From Vitrella brassicaformis CCMP3155 (Eukaryota > Protista > Chromerida): DNA of 64,000 nt. This document shows, piece by piece, positions 17,507-51,277 of this stretch. The DNA lies in assembly GCA_001179505.1 (NCBI GenBank), contig CDMY01000478.1, forward strand, positions 5,067 to 69,066, written 5' to 3'. The notes below the pieces were generated by a model, which saw nothing but the letters and a program-made list of their open reading frames with translations, ran no database searches and was not told the DNA's origin. The position numbers and the translations under genes are program-made. Positions within the stretch are counted from its first letter, which is position 1. The number at the start of each line of letters is the position of its first letter.

Positions 17507-18400
17507 GATCTCTCTCGCCCTTCATGGGTTCCCTGCTGAGCTGCTGCTTCTTTGCCCCGCTGTTTGTCGGACTGTGTGGATGCCTGCACACCAACACACA
17601 GGTCAGTTTGTCGGCAGCGCCGGCCGCACACAAACAGGCAGAGAGCACAGACACCGACATCAATCTCTCTCTCTCTCTCTCTGTGCGTGTGTGTGCAGCC
17701 GTCTACTGATCCATCATTGTTCATCGGCCCCGCCCCCCTCACTGCGTCGCGGCCGCCCCCACTCGCCACTCCCGCCGCCCCTTCGCCACTCACAAGGCCC
17801 TTCGCCAGCGGGAACCGTCATGACTGGGCTGGCCTGGCTGGCAGCTCACGTCACCGTTGACCTCATCTACAGAATGGTCAAGAGGCACCCGTCATACCCA
17901 CCCGGTGAGCTACATGGGCGTTGCAGTCCACACCCTCGAGGAGCGCACCGTCGACGTCGGCCTGCCCGTCAGTGAGGGACTTGCCGGCAAGGGCGACAGC
18001 TCCTTCGACCCCATCCGCCTTATCGTCCAACGGCCGCCGAGTGAGTGAGTGAGCGATGGAGGAGCAAGGCAGCCAGAGCGGGATGGAGGGAGGGAGGAGT
18101 GCATCGCTTGCTGACCCGCCCACGGCTGTGCAGCATGGATGTGTGCGCCACGCCTTTAGGTAGCGAGCGGCCCCGATTCGTCGGCCTCCCCCTCGGCTTT
18201 CCCTTTGGGCCTGTATACTTCTAGATGGCAGTTTCCATGGGTGGGTGACCGACACATTCGCACACACAGAACTGGGCTGCTCCTGGCTGTCTGGTCATCC
18301 GTCTGTGTGTTTGTGCCTTCAGGTGCCCATTGTTGCGGTCCGTGCGGTAGCTAGTGGTGACTGCAGTGGAGGTTTGTTCGGTTCGACCGACTGACGGATG
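17507..18400. repeat. Left arm of a ~0.9 kb inverted repeat pair (partner 59365-60326)
   Basis: Sequence is the reverse complement of 59365-60326, with substitutions and one internal replaced segment. Both ORF sets share RNNGHLKAQTH..GAAQF.VCECVGHPPMETAI and VSYMGVAVHTLEERTVDVGLPVSEG.AGKGDSSF.PIRLIVQRPPSE. Confidence 0.92.
17524..18159 (+). pseudogene. Decayed signal-peptide + Crinkler-type ubiquitin-like header gene (copy 1)
   Basis: Exon 1 MGSLLSCCFFAPLFVGLCGCLHTNTQ|gt; exon 2 PSTDPSLFIGPAP... It has a short frameshifting deletion, and the first half of the header is replaced relative to copy 2. The C-terminal header motif AGKGDSSFDPIRLIVQRPP|gtgagt is retained. Confidence 0.6.
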
Positions 18401-43153: not shown

Positions 43154-45300
43154 ATGTCTGACACTGCTGCTGCTGGAGATGACGGCCGTCAGGTGAGGCT
43201 GCAGCCATGAAGGGGGTCATGGTGATGTCAGCTCATCGTTCACTCTTCTGTGTGTGTGTGAGATAACAGGCCACATCTGCCGCTGCTGCAAGCGATGAGG
43301 ATCAGCGACGCCCAGAGAGGGAGAGGAAACTCAGGCAAACCATCGCAGACACGGTAGAGCAAATGACTCAGACAGGCTGAATGAAGCACTGACTCACTCG
43401 CTGTCGCTCTTCTGTGTGTCTTTGCCTTTGTGCAGCCTGGTCTTGTCAACTGCATCACGGCCTTTCTGCCCCTGTATCTGCTCGGCCTGCTGTCGACCAC
43501 GGCCTGGGACCCCACAGCGCCCACACACAGCCACCTCACCATCGACAGCACCAACAGCAACGAGCGGTCGGTGTGGCAGCGGGTCCCTCTCGCTCTCGGC
43601 ACCCAATGGGCCAACAAACTCACTCGGCTGACGACAATTACGTTGCGCTATCCCGTCGGCGCGGCTCTGTGGTGCATCGACGTCTTTATCACCGTGATCG
43701 AGGGCCATGTTGCCGGCCGGCGGGCTGCCAATATGAATGGCGGCACCCTGCGCACCATCACATTGGAAGGCGTGAGATTGGCTGAGAGGGAGATGAGTAC
43801 CGTCGGCCGACCACAGCAGCTACCCCCTGACCAGATCCCGCCTCTCGTCCCGCCTCCATCCCTTGATGCACTCACGACCATCACTGGCCTCCTCGACGAT
43901 CATCACGACCTGGCTGACAGAGGCTGGCGGATGCCGTCACTCGAGACAGTGGAGCATCACCGGTGGGGGGCCGATAAGCTGGGCCGCCTCATCTGCTCGT
44001 CAGAGTCGCTGCAGCTCATTTGTGGGGATCTGCCGGCGGCCGAGGAGTGGGCCAGTGTGTTCGAGCGCATGCCCGAGGCAGCTGCTGGGCAGCGGGGGCC
44101 CCTTGCAGGTCTGCGGAGTATCGGCACTATCGATCTGGGCTTCGATGCTGACCGGGCGCGGGCAGCGGTGGACAGACTGCAGGTAACTTACCACCAATGG
44201 ATGCACGTGTCAGCGAGGTGTTAACGGTGATCTCACCATGGGTGTGTGCTGTAGGTGGCGCTCACGTCACGTGGCTGCCGCCGGTCGCTCACTCAGCTGG
44301 TGGTGTCGATGAGCGATTGGATCATCGACAGTCGTGTCCTTCCCCTGTTGCAGTCCCTCGACTCGCTACACAACACGTGCTGCCGACCCGAAGCCGAAGT
44401 CGCCGTCGAGTACCTTGATGCTTACTTTTTCGACCTGTCGTTCTTCTACAGCGACGATTTTCCCACCAACCCCTCCCCCCTCTTCAAGACGGCCATCCAG
44501 GCGGCCGCACGGAAGGTAGACGAGGTGAGGTATGTCATCAGCCAGCATGACCTCACCCACCCCGTCGACAGCCCCAGCCAGGCGGCCATCGACCTCGCCA
44601 AGACACTCACATTCGACAAGGTGGAGGACGTGTGGGTCAACGACGCCGATGGCTTCATCCCCCCTCCCAACGCCCCCTCACCGCAGCCCACCATCATCAC
44701 ACACCTGCAGCAGTTCCCAAGGGCCACATGCTTGGAGGTCAACAGCGGTGTGGGCAGTGCTGCGGGTCGGCTGATGGCAGAGAAGATGCCCAGGGTGGTC
44801 GAGTGGTTGGAGTTCAACTCAGCTGTGAGTGGAGAGGACAGAAGGGCCGTGTTGGAGGCGGTGGGGGCGAGGAGGGAGGTCGACACTGTCGAGGTCGATG
44901 AGGTCAGTCTCGCTGAGGGCGCATTGGACGGCTGGCAATCGGACTGCTGCCCATCGATTCACAACCTAGTCATGCATCTGTCAGCTACCCAATGGATTCC
45001 AATAAACACTTCTGGCTGGCTCATTTTATGTGTGCATTGCTGCCGTCTGTGTGCTGTCATTCAGTGCCCGATGGTTTGGAGGCCTCTGCGGCTGCCGAGC
45101 TCATCCGCGACGGCGTCTCATCAATCGTGGGTGGCGTCCGAGGCCTAAGGCGTTTGACGCTGACATTGCGGTGCGGTAAAGCCGTTCGCGGCGCCATTGC
45201 GCTGCTGCTTCCAGACGGCACAGAGGTCGGTGACAACTTCACCACCACCACAAGTCACCGCACCGTCTTCATTCGCCTGGACGTAACTCGTCGCTCTTAG
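43154..45300 (+). CDS. Lineage-specific (Vitrella-type) F-box-like/LRR-like family protein
   Basis: RKLRQTIADT|PGLVNCITAFLPLYLLGLLS..HSHLTIDSTNSNERSVWQRVPLALGTQWANKLTRLTTITLRYP..WCIDVFITVIEGHVAGRRAA..GPLAGLRSIG..RLQ|VALTSRGCRRSLTQL..PDGTEVGDNF..VTRRS*. Paralogous to 4392-7300. Possible frame break in the short second exon (~43300). Confidence 0.75.
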
Positions 45301-46692
45301 AGGGTGAGAACAGGCAGAGCAATGAATCATTGCCTTCACATAACGTGTGTGTGTTGATGTGTTTTCCAGGCTGTGTGTCGAGAGCATACGACATGACACA
45401 ACAGCATCCTACCGTAGCACTCACACCCCGTAGAAAGAGAGGGAGGGAGGGAGGGTGTAACGGATGGATGGACGGAGACCTGGTATGCCATTGTATACCT
45501 GGCGGCTGTCTTTGCCCATGACTGCGGTGGACAAGTGTGCGCCTCAGTCATTCCGCCGCCCCTCTGGTCGGCAACTGCTTGAGCAGTTGTGTCACACGTA
45601 TGCTATCATCGGGGTTGTGATTGTGTGTTGGTGGTGCTGAAGGGCTGCCTATCGCTGCCATGCTGGTGCGTGTGTGTGTGTGTGTGTGTGGGCGTGTGGG
45701 CGTGTGTGGGCGTGTGGGTGGCTCGTCGGGCTGTCTGCCCGAGCGCACACATGAAGACACCACGTTACGCAGCTTTACTGCTGACTGCCTGGCGGGCGGG
45801 GTGTCTGAATGGTTGCTGCTGTGTGCCGGCTGACGCGGCCCATCCCACCACACACACACACACACACACACACGGGGCACAATACAAACATCAACCCTCA
45901 CATCAAGAGGCAGGTAGGTTGCGCTTGGTGTGCCCCCACCCCCACTCAAGCTGCTGCCATGTCCCTTAGTGCGTGTCTGTGTCTGAGCGTCCGCACGTGG
46001 CTCGTGGGTGGACTGATGGACCCGTTTATCGACTGGCTGACTTCCATCTGTGTCTGCGTGTGTGTGCGTCGGTCTCTGTGTTAGTGTGAAGCTGTGTGAA
46101 GTTCCATCGCGAAGCCATTCATCGCGTCATCCAGCCATCCATTATCTCACGGCTATGCAGTCTCTGTTGACACACGCAGTCGAGAAGCGTCCACCCACAC
46201 ACCTCACACTGACACACACACAGCACGACCCTTTGTTTGGTGAGTTCATGGCTGATCGATGGCCCAGAGGTGCAGCTGTGCACCTGCACACCGTCGCCAA
46301 GAACGATCTCCACCCAGCAAACAGAGTCAACACAGCGGGCCAGCATGCATCTGTCTGTCTGTCTGTGCTACGTGGCTTGGCTTGTCGGCTGTGTGCCCTG
46401 TGTGCCCTCTGCGTACCATTCCTCAACACCCCACCCTCGACCCACAGAGAGAGACAGAGAGAGGGAGAGAGAGTGAGGTGGGCGGCCGGGAAGGAGAGAG
46501 CACGTCTCTAAGAGACAGACATACGAGGTCTCCATCCATCCATCCGCCAAGTAGCCATGCGACACATACGTACAAACACGATAGGTACGGTGTTGTTGTC
46601 TCATGGCTGCATAGACACACAGCCTGGAACACAACAACACACACAGTATGAGGGCGATGGACGCATGGGGCTGCCTCTTCCCGCCTCACCCT

Positions 46693-47301
46693 CTAAGAGC
46701 GACGCGTTGCAGTCAGGATCATGCCGTCTGACATGTCATCCGTGTCGATGCTGAAGTTGTCGCCGACCTCTGTGCCGAGGTCGGGGAGCAGCTGCTGGAT
46801 GGCGCCACGAATCACCAGCAGCTGCTCCCCGACCTGTAGGTAAGGGAGAAACAAACAGCCCATTGGATGCGGCCCGACACATACATACATACACACACAC
46901 ACATACATACCGCCTTCCTCGATGAAGACTTCCAGGTGATGGATCTCCGGCAGCAAATCCCATTCGTCTCCCCACTGCAGTCCGGCCTCGCCCTCTCCCA
47001 GCTCATCGACATACAAGTGCACACGCGCCAGCTTTCTCCCTGAACCGACCGCCTTCAGCAGCCCCAACACCTCGCCAGCAGGCGCCGAGTAGTAGACCCC
47101 CACCTCGTTCACCTGCGGCATCAACTTGGCCAAATAGCACGCAGCCCTCAACGCGGAGCCGCCGCCCTGCATCCCGAGAGATGGGATCCGCCTCGGGCGA
47201 GAGGTGGCGGAGCAGAGCGGGGTCGGGTGTTGGTATAGTGGGAGGGACACCGACCTCAATTGCTGATAGTGCCTTGCAGCCGTGGGCAGCCAACACACGC
47301 C
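46693..47301 (-). pseudogene. C-terminal fragment of a third member of the same lineage-specific family
   Basis: RVLAAHGCKALSAIEVGVPPTIPTPDPALLRHLSPEA (frame change) SLGMQGGGSALRAACYLAKLMPQV..|VGEQLLVIRGAIQQLLPDLGTEVGDNFSID..ATRRS*. The ending parallels the 43-45 kb gene. No matching 5' half found. Confidence 0.7.
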
Positions 47302-47962
47302 CTGATCGACACACGAAGGGGGAGGTCAAGTAAATCCCACTACTGCGTGCGTGTGCGTACCCTCCGGTTTTGTTGTTCCTGATCCACGCACAGAAGGAGA
47401 GTGGATCAATCCCCGCTGAAGCCTACCGGTGCTCTACGGACGGCGGTGGCTTGTTGCCTCTCTTGACGGTTGCCCCACTCACTGGTGTGACGCTGACGAC
47501 ACACAGACGTACCAATTGCGCCACGCCATGCTGTGTATGTCAGCATCTGTTCGTGTGTCATACTCTGTGGCGCAATGTATGCATGATGTCGATGTGTGGC
47601 GCCTGTTGTGGCCCTGTTGTGGCCCTTGGCCGCCGTCAGCGAGAGCTCCCAATGAATGAAAGACCTGTGCATGGGACGGCGGCGATGAATGGCACGCAGC
47701 AGAGAGACGACAGGTCAAGGCCACTCCAGGCGTTTGTGTACCTCTTCTACGAGCAGCTGTCGAGGCCCACCTCCCTCCTGTGCCATCGTGATCTGCAGCT
47801 CCGAAGAAGGCAACATCAATAGTTGGGAGATCCGTGTCGCCGTGCCTTCTGTGTGACGTACCTGAGCCTCCGCGCCCTGATAAATCTGCTCGATGCCATG
47901 ACAACTCACTCGTTAGGGTCAAGCGTGCAGGGTTTTACACCCTACCACCCCACCATCGTCCG

Positions 47963-48269
47963 ATGTCGAAGCGCAGTGGCTCTTCTGCCGCCGCAGCCGC
48001 AACGGAGAGGCTGACCAAGTATGTCAAGCAAGAGGAGAGGTCGACCGCTACCCCCGTCAGGATTCCCAGGGACAGCATTGTCATGGAGCTGAAAAGAGAA
48101 ATCGCTGGCACTCTGGTCCGTGCTCAAGACTTGGAGCTGGTCGACGGCGATGGGAAGGTTATGGAGGTGAACCTCGACGCCTCGGTGACGGACGCACTAG
48201 CCGGACGCGGCGACTCTCAAGACATGCCCATCGTCTACAGATTTCCGAAAGAGGTATGCACACGTACAA

Positions 48270-48308
<39 letters not shown>

Positions 48309-49198
48309 CGGTGTTGCGTTGACATGTGCAGCGCCCTATGTACGAACTGAGTAAAATGCCGTCCGAACTCTATCGCAAGCCGTCCGATCTCGGCCTCAGC
48401 ATCACACCGTGGAGAGAAGACCTGCCGACAGAGCCGTTCAACGAGCATTCATTCACCAAACCTGCGGGCGATGCAGACCATAACGCCGTGTTGAAGCTCG
48501 TTACCGACAAGATTCTTCCGGCAGTCCTCAGTCACGTCCCACCAGGCAAATGGGCGTGGGCGGATGTCCAAGATCAGCGAGACGAGCTGAAAGGCGACGA
48601 GGACATGTCTTGTGACCTATCGGGCTCGCCTGGCGATATCATCATTCTGCCGGACCGCTATGTGAAGATTGGGGAGAGTGGGAAACACGAGCTCAAACTT
48701 AGCCTGCCGACCGCTCTGCAGATCACTGAGGTGGTGATTGAAGCCAAGAGCAAGACAGCGAAGATGGAGAAGAGCGGCAACTTCTCAGCTCAACTATGTG
48801 GACAGCTACTTATGACTAGGCAACATCAGAGGACTGATCAGCCCATTCTCGGGCTGCTGATGGATGGAGAGGGATGTTGGCTGAGGGCGCTGAGCAAGGA
48901 GCGACATATTCAAGAGATATTCGTTTCGGTCCACGAGGCAGCCAACCAGCTGACGCAGTACCTCCGAGGACGCGAGCCTCATATGAGGGCGTCGGCAGAG
49001 CCAACGGACGAAGACGAGGATGACGACTACGAATTTGAGGGGAGAGAGGAGCACAGGGCCATTGTACGCCAGTCGCAGCTAAGGGCGTGCATCTCACAGT
49101 ATGTGGAGGGCGTGAGAGAGGGACGAATCGCAATCCCCCACGGGTGGACATGGGAAGCGAAAGAGATGAAGGAAGTCAGTGGACCAGAAGTGGTGTAA
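47963..49198 (+). CDS. Crinkler-like (CR-type) protein: ubiquitin-like header + PD-(D/E)xK restriction-endonuclease-fold domain; exons 47963-48253 and 48332-49198 (385 aa)
   Basis: Header: TKYVKQEERSTATPVRIPRDSIVMELKREIAGTLVRAQDLELV..DALAGRGDSQDMPIVYRFP, ending at a phase-0 intron. Nuclease-like motifs: LSGSPGDIIILP, VVIEAKS, AQLCGQLL, PILGLLMDGEGCWL. The frame is open to TAA 49198. Confidence 0.72.
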
Positions 49199-51277
49199 GT
49201 GTGATGGGTGGGTGACGGCTATGTTGGCATATGGCTGGCATGTTTGTCGCTATATGAGACACTGATAACGCTCACCCAAGCCATGAATCAATGGTGCGTG
49301 CTGCCTATGTCTTGGATGCGCCGTGAATCCGATTTTTCATTCGAAGTCTTGCCAGTGCTCGTCTCACAGCACGCGCACGTGCCAACACGGACAGACACAC
49401 CTTCAAAACCACCACTCACCGCACCCTGCCCTGAGCAGTCACATGAGCAGTCACACGCAGCGTTAATCAGTCCACACGCAAACACATACACGCCACCACA
49501 CGCATCGCATCAGCTTTGACAGCTCCCTCCGAATTAAGCCAGAGCACGCTCGCATCACGCTCACATGAGTGAATGGCAAAAATCGGGTCTAACTCTCCAA
49601 AATCGAGCCTTGACCAGCAGTGAAAAAACGCACGAACTTGCCCTTCCCCCCCTCCCTCTGTCATCCACATTCACCGTCAAACACCGCCGGCAACCGATGC
49701 ATGAGATGCCGTCGCGGATGCGTCGCTGCCTTCATTGTATATCCCTCGTCGGTGTCAGTGTGTGAAATCAATGCACTGAGCAGCTTATTCAGTCAATCCA
49801 TCATGATGCGAGAGAGTCCATGTGAAGACATATATGAACAGCTTCTCTCAATCAGTCCTTGAAATGCAGGCCTTTACCAAGCTCCCTCACACCGACTTGA
49901 CCAAAGTGTCTCGCAGAGAAAGGCGCGTTCGCCTGACTGCTCCACAAAGCCCCTTGTGTATGCACAAAGCCATACCGTCCGCCACTTCGCCCCTCCATGT
50001 GTCTGTCTATCCGACAGTCACCACATAATGAGTAGTTGGCTGCCGGCCCGACGATGAACTTGTGCATGTGCCGTCAGATGCATGTGCATCTGTCTGATCT
50101 GTCCGACCTCTCAGTCATCAGGCAGGTCGTCCCGCTGCCGCCTCAGTTCAGATGTCTATCAGCTCCATTGTCAGCTCACATCAGTAAACGTCGGTACCTA
50201 TACACACACACAGACGGATGGCTGGCTGGCTGGCGGGCATAGCCTTTCGCCTCTTCCTCATGGCATACTGACCACAGACAAAGACAGGTGCGCATTGCAT
50301 CTCATTAGCCTCCTAGCTGCACACTCACTCTTCTCTTGAACTCAGCCAGACTGCGAGCGGAACACCCACTCACACCCACACCCACACACACGCACACAAC
50401 ACAGAGAGGTGACGGTCGAGCGCATGGCGATGGGATCAAGTCGTGTGTGTGTGGTTGGTGGCTCACAATCTGTCCAGATATCCGTCATGTCCTCGGCCCC
50501 CTCAATCATCAGGATGCGCTGCGGATCGTCCAGGAAGTCCTTAAGCTCTGCCACACAATACAATACACCCATACGCAGATGTGACATGCAGGATCTGCAT
50601 GCTGTGCATACGCGGCTCACTCTTGAGGCCCTTCCTCCGATGCCGCTCAGCTTGTCCAGCCAGTCCATTGCTGCGCACTGAATAGCCTCTCATACGGACC
50701 GCACGGCCAAGAAATGAAGCGACCCAAGAATAATACCCATCGGATCTTCTGCGACGGATGACGGATCGCTCATCCGCCGTCCTTGCCTTTGTTTGTCCAC
50801 TTCTTCTTCTAAGCTCGCACTCCAGGGAGCTCGCAGGTCCCTCCGGGTACTCTTTTCCATTGTTGGAGCAGTTGCATTCGCAGGAATAGACGAGAAGCGA
50901 GAATCCAGTCACGCGAGGAAGCAAGGGACCCGGCACCATCGTGTCCTGCCCGAGGACCGCGCAGATCCTACCAGAGAGTAAGTGGGATGAGACCATACAC
51001 ACACACTCACAGAGGAGGTCAGGCAGCCAGACCGATGAGAAGGGACCCAGGTCCGAGGGTGGGCGAGTGCACACAGACCAGGCAGACGGGCCAGGGAGGT
51101 GTCGGCATGTGCGCATCACTGCCATGCACATCGCAAGGCAACACCCACCAGAGACTGAGGGGGACAGACAGGCACAGCACGCAGCACAAACTGTCATGAG
51201 TGGTGTCCATGGCTGGGTGGAGGCAACCTGTCCGCCCTTCTCATGTCTGTGTGTCGGCTTGTGTCTTGTGTGTCAGG

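Follow-up and report, generated by a model that had tools for sequence, protein, structure and literature searches.

The window analysed here, a stretch of 64,000 nucleotides from Vitrella brassicaformis CCMP3155, belongs to contig CDMY01000478.1 of assembly GCA_001179505.1, which was published by Woo et al. 2015 (PMC4501334). Our analysis concerns a gene on its forward strand, at positions 47963-49198, in which a ubiquitin-like (Ubl) domain is followed by a predicted nuclease-like domain. An earlier note on this DNA, made from the letters alone, had described the gene as intact, as composed of two exons and as part of a chromerid-like genome. These statements agree with what we found: neither exon contains an internal stop, every peptide motif quoted in the note is present in the translated exons, and the contig comes from Vitrella brassicaformis. 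Furthermore, the product of exon 1 joined directly to the product of exon 2 is identical to a public 385-aa protein from Vitrella brassicaformis CCMP3155 (100% identity to the exon 2 query), deposited as "unnamed protein product" and here referred to as P0001. No other in-frame ATG occurs between the preceding stop codon and the start ATG at 47963. The features of the gene are listed below, with h standing for a hydrophobic residue and x for any residue.

47963..48253 (+), exon 1: 97 codons beginning with the ATG, which encode a short hydrophilic N-terminus and then the ubiquitin-like domain; residues 1-97 of P0001
48005..48247 (+), ubiquitin-like beta-grasp domain, predicted with AlphaFold2 and Foldseek searches of the PDB: residues 15-95
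48254..48331 (+), intron: 78 nt, GT..AG, phase 0; most of it is made up of a (CA)n(GA)n microsatellite, and it contains a stop codon in frame
48332..49198 (+), exon 2: 288 codons and TAA, encoding a linker, the nuclease-like core, an acidic stretch and a C-terminal helix
48479..48967 (+), predicted PD-(D/E)xK core of the restriction endonuclease (REase) fold: residues 147-309, with helix, three strands, helix, strand(s) and helix
48623..48652 (+), G-x-P-G-D-h-x-I-h-P block: the most conserved block of the family, in which D199 (48635-48637) starts core strand 2
48731..48748 (+), V-V-h-E-h-K block: core strand 3, with E234 (48740-48742) and K236 (48746-48748)
48791-48793 (+), invariant Q251: in the helix after core strand 3
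48971..49039 (+), acidic stretch with predicted disorder: residues 311-333, predicted local distance difference test score (pLDDT) <50, acidic in all four members of the family
49043..49117 (+), C-terminal helix: residues 335-359, conserved like the G...P-x-G-[WF] turn that comes after it
49199..49307 (+), part of the 3' untranslated region covered by the transcript-derived contig L002: 100% identity in the L002 alignment

The gene is expressed. The contig L002, which is 2,962 nt long and was assembled from run ERR558152, encodes the 385-codon frame without interruption. It matches the window at 47845-48253 and then at 48330-49307, with 100% identity over the coding part, and the 78-nt intron is missing from it. 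Its spliced structure indicates that L002 is derived from RNA, and since the intron is absent, the junction across 48254-48331, for which the earlier note had proposed a transcript check, is supported by transcript-derived sequence. A transcript that retained this intron would run into a stop inside it and yield a product consisting of the N-terminal domain only, hereafter called the header.

No signal peptide or membrane segment was identified in any of the four proteins of the family, the maximum hydropathy over 19 residues being <=1.52. We interpret it as an ordinary nuclear gene of Vitrella, which is expressed and correctly spliced and encodes a soluble protein of 385 residues without a secretion signal. 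The gene was already annotated as a hypothetical protein, and the new part is a divergent nuclease-like family in a fusion with a Ubl domain.

Predicted folds of the two domains

Exon 1 is predicted with confidence to encode a ubiquitin-like domain with a beta-grasp fold, as the earlier note had proposed. An AlphaFold2 model based on an alignment of the four family sequences reached pLDDT values of 68-89 over residues 11-90, the remainder of the model being poor, and placed the elements in the order strand, strand, helix, strand, short helix, strand. When this model was compared with the PDB in Foldseek, all of the 50 best matches were to ubiquitin-like domains (probability 0.98-1.00, E 0.002-0.02), with target template-modelling scores (TM-scores) of 0.5-0.71 for single-domain entries. 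The matches include the ubiquitin-like domain (ULD) of TBK1, the UBL domains of RAD23A/B, ubiquitin variants, ISG15, Dsk2, the Ubl domain of parkin and FAT10. The assignment is made at the level of the fold: sequence and profile searches of the PDB with the header gave nothing significant, the best beta-grasp entry being the PB1 domain of Bem1 (E 0.3).

The TBK1 ULD, the UBL domains of RAD23 and Dsk2, and ISG15 have the beta-grasp fold in common with the header of P0001, at target TM-scores of up to 0.71, and they serve as docking modules within larger proteins, likewise without being conjugated. They differ from the header in that the identity amounts to only 8-22%, with no significant sequence match. 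Because it has no C-terminal Gly-Gly, the domain in P0001 is not a conjugatable ubiquitin. The header contains a hydrophobic h-x-L-h strand and the invariant residues P89...R93...E97. In the model of the N-terminal domain, the final strand extends to residue 93, and exon 1 extends to residue 97; the intron therefore falls at the domain boundary, which is where the earlier note had placed the exon split.

For the domain encoded by exon 2, we consider it likely that it is a divergent representative of the PD-(D/E)xK (REase) fold. The AlphaFold2 model with exon 2 as the target had a predicted TM-score (pTM) of 0.54, and pLDDT values of 70-87 were obtained for residues 31-80 and 101-140. These positions, like those of the modelled elements below, are given in exon-2 numbering, to which 97 is added to obtain the protein numbering.

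50-67, helix
74-78, strand
102-107, strand
between 107 and 134, small hairpin and helix (insert)
134-138, strand
151-164, helix
172-177, strand
181-187, strand
194-199, strand
200-212, helix

In the model, the order of these elements corresponds to that of the canonical alpha-beta-beta-beta-alpha-beta core of PD-(D/E)xK proteins, with a hairpin insert. Moreover, D199, E234, K236 and Q251 are located on the elements where they would be expected in such a core and are invariant in all four members, among a total of 58 invariant columns in the family alignment. An automated conservation scan of this alignment picked the G-x-P-G-D-h-x-I-h-P block as the best-conserved stretch, and within the core the two best-conserved blocks, G-x-P-G-D and V-V-h-E-h-K, are the two putative catalytic strands.

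The best match of the exon-2 model in the PDB was 9y1l, a putative restriction-endonuclease-domain protein (E 0.018, probability 0.93), followed by 3ot2, a DUF820 putative nuclease (E 0.031), with the nuclease-bearing DrdV and EcoR124I HsdR at lower ranks. The DUF820/Uma2-type and related REase-fold proteins 3ot2 and 9y1l share with the model the alpha-beta-beta-beta-alpha-beta core and acidic residues on strands 2 and 3. However, the matches are weak (9-11% identity), there is no sequence-profile relationship, and these bacterial proteins stand alone, with no ubiquitin-like domain attached, unlike P0001.

Several observations count against the assignment to a nuclease fold. None of the Foldseek matches in the PDB reaches an E-value of 0.001, and their target TM-scores are 0.42-0.45. 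The model is based on an alignment of four sequences, and the helix that carries Q251 has pLDDT values of 43-46. Searches of Pfam, NCBIfam, PADLOC and PHROGs, as well as sequence and profile searches of the PDB, gave no match to any PD-(D/E)xK family. Indeed, nothing above threshold was obtained when both exons and the four members were scanned against the first four of these collections, and PDB searches with P0001, with a further alignment (A2) and with the header alignment produced nothing significant. The only sub-threshold Pfam matches of the four members were to DUF6941, FOG1-like_PR and CSD_RNase_II. We attribute the FOG1-like_PR match to chance, as it was seen in one member only, with 17 bits against a cut-off of 27. 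Profile matches are often missing for divergent PD-(D/E)xK members, and the null result therefore lowers the nuclease claim without excluding it. The REase core that the earlier note had proposed for exon 2 is thus plausible: the order of the elements, the placement of the invariant D, ExK and Q and the top PDB matches speak for it, the weak scores and the missing profile match against it.

Another explanation is that the C-terminal domain is not a nuclease, that the D/ExK residues coincide by chance in some other alpha/beta fold, for example one similar to the N-lobe of a kinase, and that the protein is a ubiquitin-like adaptor. It would be in line with the lack of a sequence-profile match to nuclease families and with the weakness of every fold match, including those in a viral structure library, which were mixed. 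Two pandoravirus DUF5898 proteins gave some of the longest alignments in this library (E 0.056-0.063, query TM-score 0.35-0.36), and Pfam puts DUF5898 in the protein-kinase clan (PMC9758233). However, PD-(D/E)xK nucleases (YqaJ-like, Cas4, exonuclease) were also among these weak viral matches, the two top matches in the PDB, with the highest probabilities, are REase-fold proteins, and the invariant acidic and lysine residues occupy REase-core positions. Furthermore, only about 75 residues follow the conserved L-H-[EQ]-A-A-N helix, which is the last helix of the core, and 22 of these are acidic and disordered, leaving no room for a kinase C-lobe. For this reason we reject a kinase-like domain of the DUF5898 type, for which the structural matches are weak and which has no kinase-clan Pfam match in any member. 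A non-nuclease C-terminal domain is on the whole unlikely in our opinion, and we favor the interpretation of exon 2 as a divergent PD-(D/E)xK domain.

The two domains are connected by a linker of about 50 residues. A profile of the tail matches the window at the C-terminal helix of P0001 only.

Family members, intron conservation and genomic context

A phmmer search with P0001 against 1.84 billion representative proteins recovered four proteins at E <=0.001, all with E <1e-30. All four are matched end to end, from the header through the C-terminal helix, and thus have one fixed, collinear architecture.

P0001, 385 aa, the query itself, Vitrella
P0002, 403 aa, 40% identity to P0001, Vitrella, on another contig
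P0003, 393 aa, 36% identity to P0001, seen only in transcript assemblies derived from MMETSP
P0004, 483 aa, 32% identity to P0001, Vitrella, on another contig

The accessions of P0002 and P0004 are CEM03606.1 and CEM11395.1. Two near-identical copies of P0003 (P0006 and P0007) were identified in the JGI samples 3300017297 and 3300017148, the variants being 99.5-99.7% identical. The coding regions of the P0003 type (L003 33-1214, L006 37-1218) have a GC content at third codon positions of 0.67, like the Vitrella gene. P0003 could come from Vitrella, as a paralogue missing from the annotation, or from a related alga, as an orthologue.

Other searches did not enlarge the family. Word-indexed searches with exon 2 and with the header region alone returned only their own product, P0001, and the same search with the family alignment returned only P0001 and P0004, with no new relatives among the matches listed. 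A metagenome scan with the family alignment produced 199 pattern matches, none of which was confirmed. Neither a header with another partner nor a C-terminal domain on its own was found in these protein searches. Likewise, tblastn and six-frame profile searches identified no paralogues in the window, and no further significant header matches were found around the paralogue loci by six-frame profile search.

The intron at the domain boundary is conserved. P0002 has a single intron of 69 nt after residue 107, which falls in the alignment column of the 97|98 junction in P0001. In P0004, an intron of 69 nt lies in the next column, a shift that is within the ambiguity of the mapping, and there are three other introns. 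The boundary intron is common to the three Vitrella paralogues and therefore predates the duplications. The annotated P0004 also has an N-terminal extension of 110 residues (L005 6001-6415) that comes from two extra small exons. A Lys/Arg-rich run in the sequence of this extension resembles a nuclear localisation signal, but the extension could also be an annotation artefact.

The three Vitrella genes are located among unrelated genes, which code for a PDZ/S41 protease, an AAA proteasome ATPase and a CPSF_A/RSE1-like protein. No conserved neighbour, such as an immunity-like partner, and no similarity in the flanks was observed among the three loci, and the search for terminal inverted or direct repeats around the gene returned microsatellite matches only. 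This is of relevance for the possibility of a selfish or mobile nuclease gene that is similar to homing endonucleases or derived from a transposon and still mobile. Nucleases with a REase fold are common in mobile elements, and the toxin domains of Crinkler/RHS (CR) proteins are thought to be derived from prokaryotic proteins linked to transposons (PMC5289972). Yet the identity among the three dispersed Vitrella copies is only 31-40%, transposon DNA is scarce in Vitrella, about 1.5 Mb (PMC4501334), and the conserved spliceosomal intron argues for the duplication of a resident gene. We find a mobile nuclease gene highly improbable, and nothing at the loci suggests either a mobile element or a conserved two-gene cassette. 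The idea of a selfish element or conflict effector, as put forward in the earlier note, was not borne out, given the lack of terminal repeats other than microsatellites, of common flanks and of a signal peptide, and the presence of the conserved intron. We instead describe the family as old, small and fixed in its architecture, with three dispersed paralogues in Vitrella and one member from a cultured marine protist.

The earlier note had also mentioned header-only copies in the window, which were not found with the family header profile. The best other place, at 17824-18045 (+), scored 8.9 bits (E 0.14 for the window), and the best of 2,000 segment shuffles scored 3.4 bits. The match here is limited to the final third of the profile, the last 35 codons or so resembling the end of the header (L-A-G-[KR]-G-D-S ... 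P-I ... R-P). Like the header exon of our gene, the open stretch stops where several GTGAG donor-like sites follow one another, and no match to the C-terminal domain was found after it. The stretch could represent a remnant or belong to another gene as one of its exons, and is not evidence when taken alone.

Upstream of the gene is a coding sequence in the opposite orientation.

46601-47786 (-), coding sequence of the minus-strand neighbour: 216 aa, no Pfam match

Six further short segments are missing from L002 in its upstream part, and their ends read CT..AC on the plus strand. These are introns of the minus-strand neighbour, and L002 is therefore a merger of two transcripts that diverge and overlap at their 5' ends. 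The positions concerned are 45849-47862 in the window and 1-1600 in L002. The two divergent genes possibly share a bidirectional promoter. We also noted an imperfect inverted repeat of 93 nt (45216-45308 and 46685-46777, 73% complementary, arms 1,376 nt apart), which is located upstream of our gene and overlaps the 3' part of the neighbour. Short introns and spacers at 48254-48331 and 45660-46910 are filled with CA/GT and GA microsatellites.

Relationship to Crinkler/RHS proteins and possible function

In the earlier note, the gene was considered to be of the Crinkler type. According to a review that summarises Zhang et al. 2016 (PMC5289972), the header of CR proteins has no true signal peptide and is in many cases a Ubl domain that is related to the N-terminus of the fungal Ssk1/Mcs4 proteins, the C-termini are enzymatic, often a REase domain with a nucleoside triphosphatase (NTPase) or a kinase, and the headers recombine extensively with different C-termini. 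P0001 has the same order of domains, a ubiquitin-like N-terminal domain and then a predicted PD-(D/E)xK domain, and it also resembles the CR proteins in having no genuine signal peptide and an exon/domain break right after the header. CR-like proteins are also present in free-living eukaryotes (PMC12957317), and Vitrella is described as free-living and non-parasitic (PMC4501334).

With these similarities in mind, we considered the possibility that P0001 is a true CR effector, in which a CR-type Ubl header is attached to a CR-REase toxin that serves in conflicts between organisms or within the genome. The Ubl fold of the header, its position directly before the predicted enzymatic domain and the missing signal peptide are all as one would expect from the description cited above (PMC5289972), the intron exactly at the header boundary would also fit, and the occurrence of CR-like proteins in free-living eukaryotes is compatible with a host that is a free-living alga. 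However, the predicted ubiquitin-like fold is generic to beta-grasp domains and hence not specific to Crinklers by itself. The Pfam family for the N-terminus of Crinklers was not matched by any of the four members at E-values up to 10. Compared with the LxLFLAK-like strand motif and the terminal HVLVxxP-like motif, which marks the recombination point in CR headers, our family has the hydrophobic h-x-L-h strand, but just two of its four members have the last proline of the proposed h-V-x-x-P motif. There is no NTPase, helix-turn-helix or kinase domain beside the nuclease-like domain.

The family also differs from the shuffled and expanded repertoire of the CR proteins in its size and composition. 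The earlier note had named the absence of shuffled-header relatives as an argument against its own classification, and no such relatives were found in the searches made here: the four collinear proteins among 1.84 billion representatives all share one fixed architecture. In these searches, the header occurs with one fixed partner only, and no lineage-specific expansion is seen. The paralogues are old, as judged from the identity of 31-40%, and have a common intron, which fits the slow divergence of a cellular gene and not the rapid turnover of an effector, and no transposon context was found. P0001 thus looks like a minimal CR protein in its architecture, but membership among the CR proteins is not supported by the sequence tests, and a true CR effector seems to us quite unlikely.

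A precedent for the combination of a Ubl header and a toxin-type enzyme that is kept in non-pathogenic eukaryotes is provided by AACRN/AACRNL, in which a Ubl domain is joined to an ADP-ribosyltransferase (PMC12957317). The enzymatic domain is an ADP-ribosyltransferase in these proteins and a predicted REase in P0001, and they are likened to each other by architecture alone.

Our best reading is that the four proteins probably represent a lineage-restricted family of intracellular nucleases with a ubiquitin-like domain, which are similar to the CR proteins in architecture only. In such a protein, D199, which opens core strand 2, would form together with E234 and K236 on core strand 3 the usual metal-binding catalytic site, which would cleave the phosphodiester bond of DNA or RNA, with Q251 on the next helix assisting catalysis. 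The ubiquitin-like domain may act as a module for protein-protein docking or regulation that would bring the putative nuclease to its partner. The nuclease activity suggested here is based on the predicted fold and the conserved residues, and the docking or regulatory role would be in keeping with that of the non-conjugated ubiquitin-like domains discussed above.

A more speculative scenario, to which we give little credence, is an undescribed family centred on the chromerids in which a Ubl header and a REase-type toxin were joined either independently of the classical Crinklers or as a very deep branch of these. The protein would then be a nuclease for intracellular conflict or self-defence, for example against invading DNA or viruses, and the intron at the domain boundary and the stretch at 17824-18045 would be traces of exon shuffling.

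As a four-member family without signs of mobility, expansion or secretion, the putative lineage-restricted Ubl-domain nucleases that we favor here represent a lead for structural and comparative work and not a new system. If the nuclease assignment is true, they would constitute a very divergent branch of the PD-(D/E)xK proteins, with no detectable sequence link to the named families, and would add an architecture composed of a ubiquitin-like domain and a REase domain in a free-living, photosynthetic relative of the apicomplexans. This would, in turn, bear on the spread of Crinkler-like architectures outside the pathogens and on the question of whether such architectures have arisen more than once.

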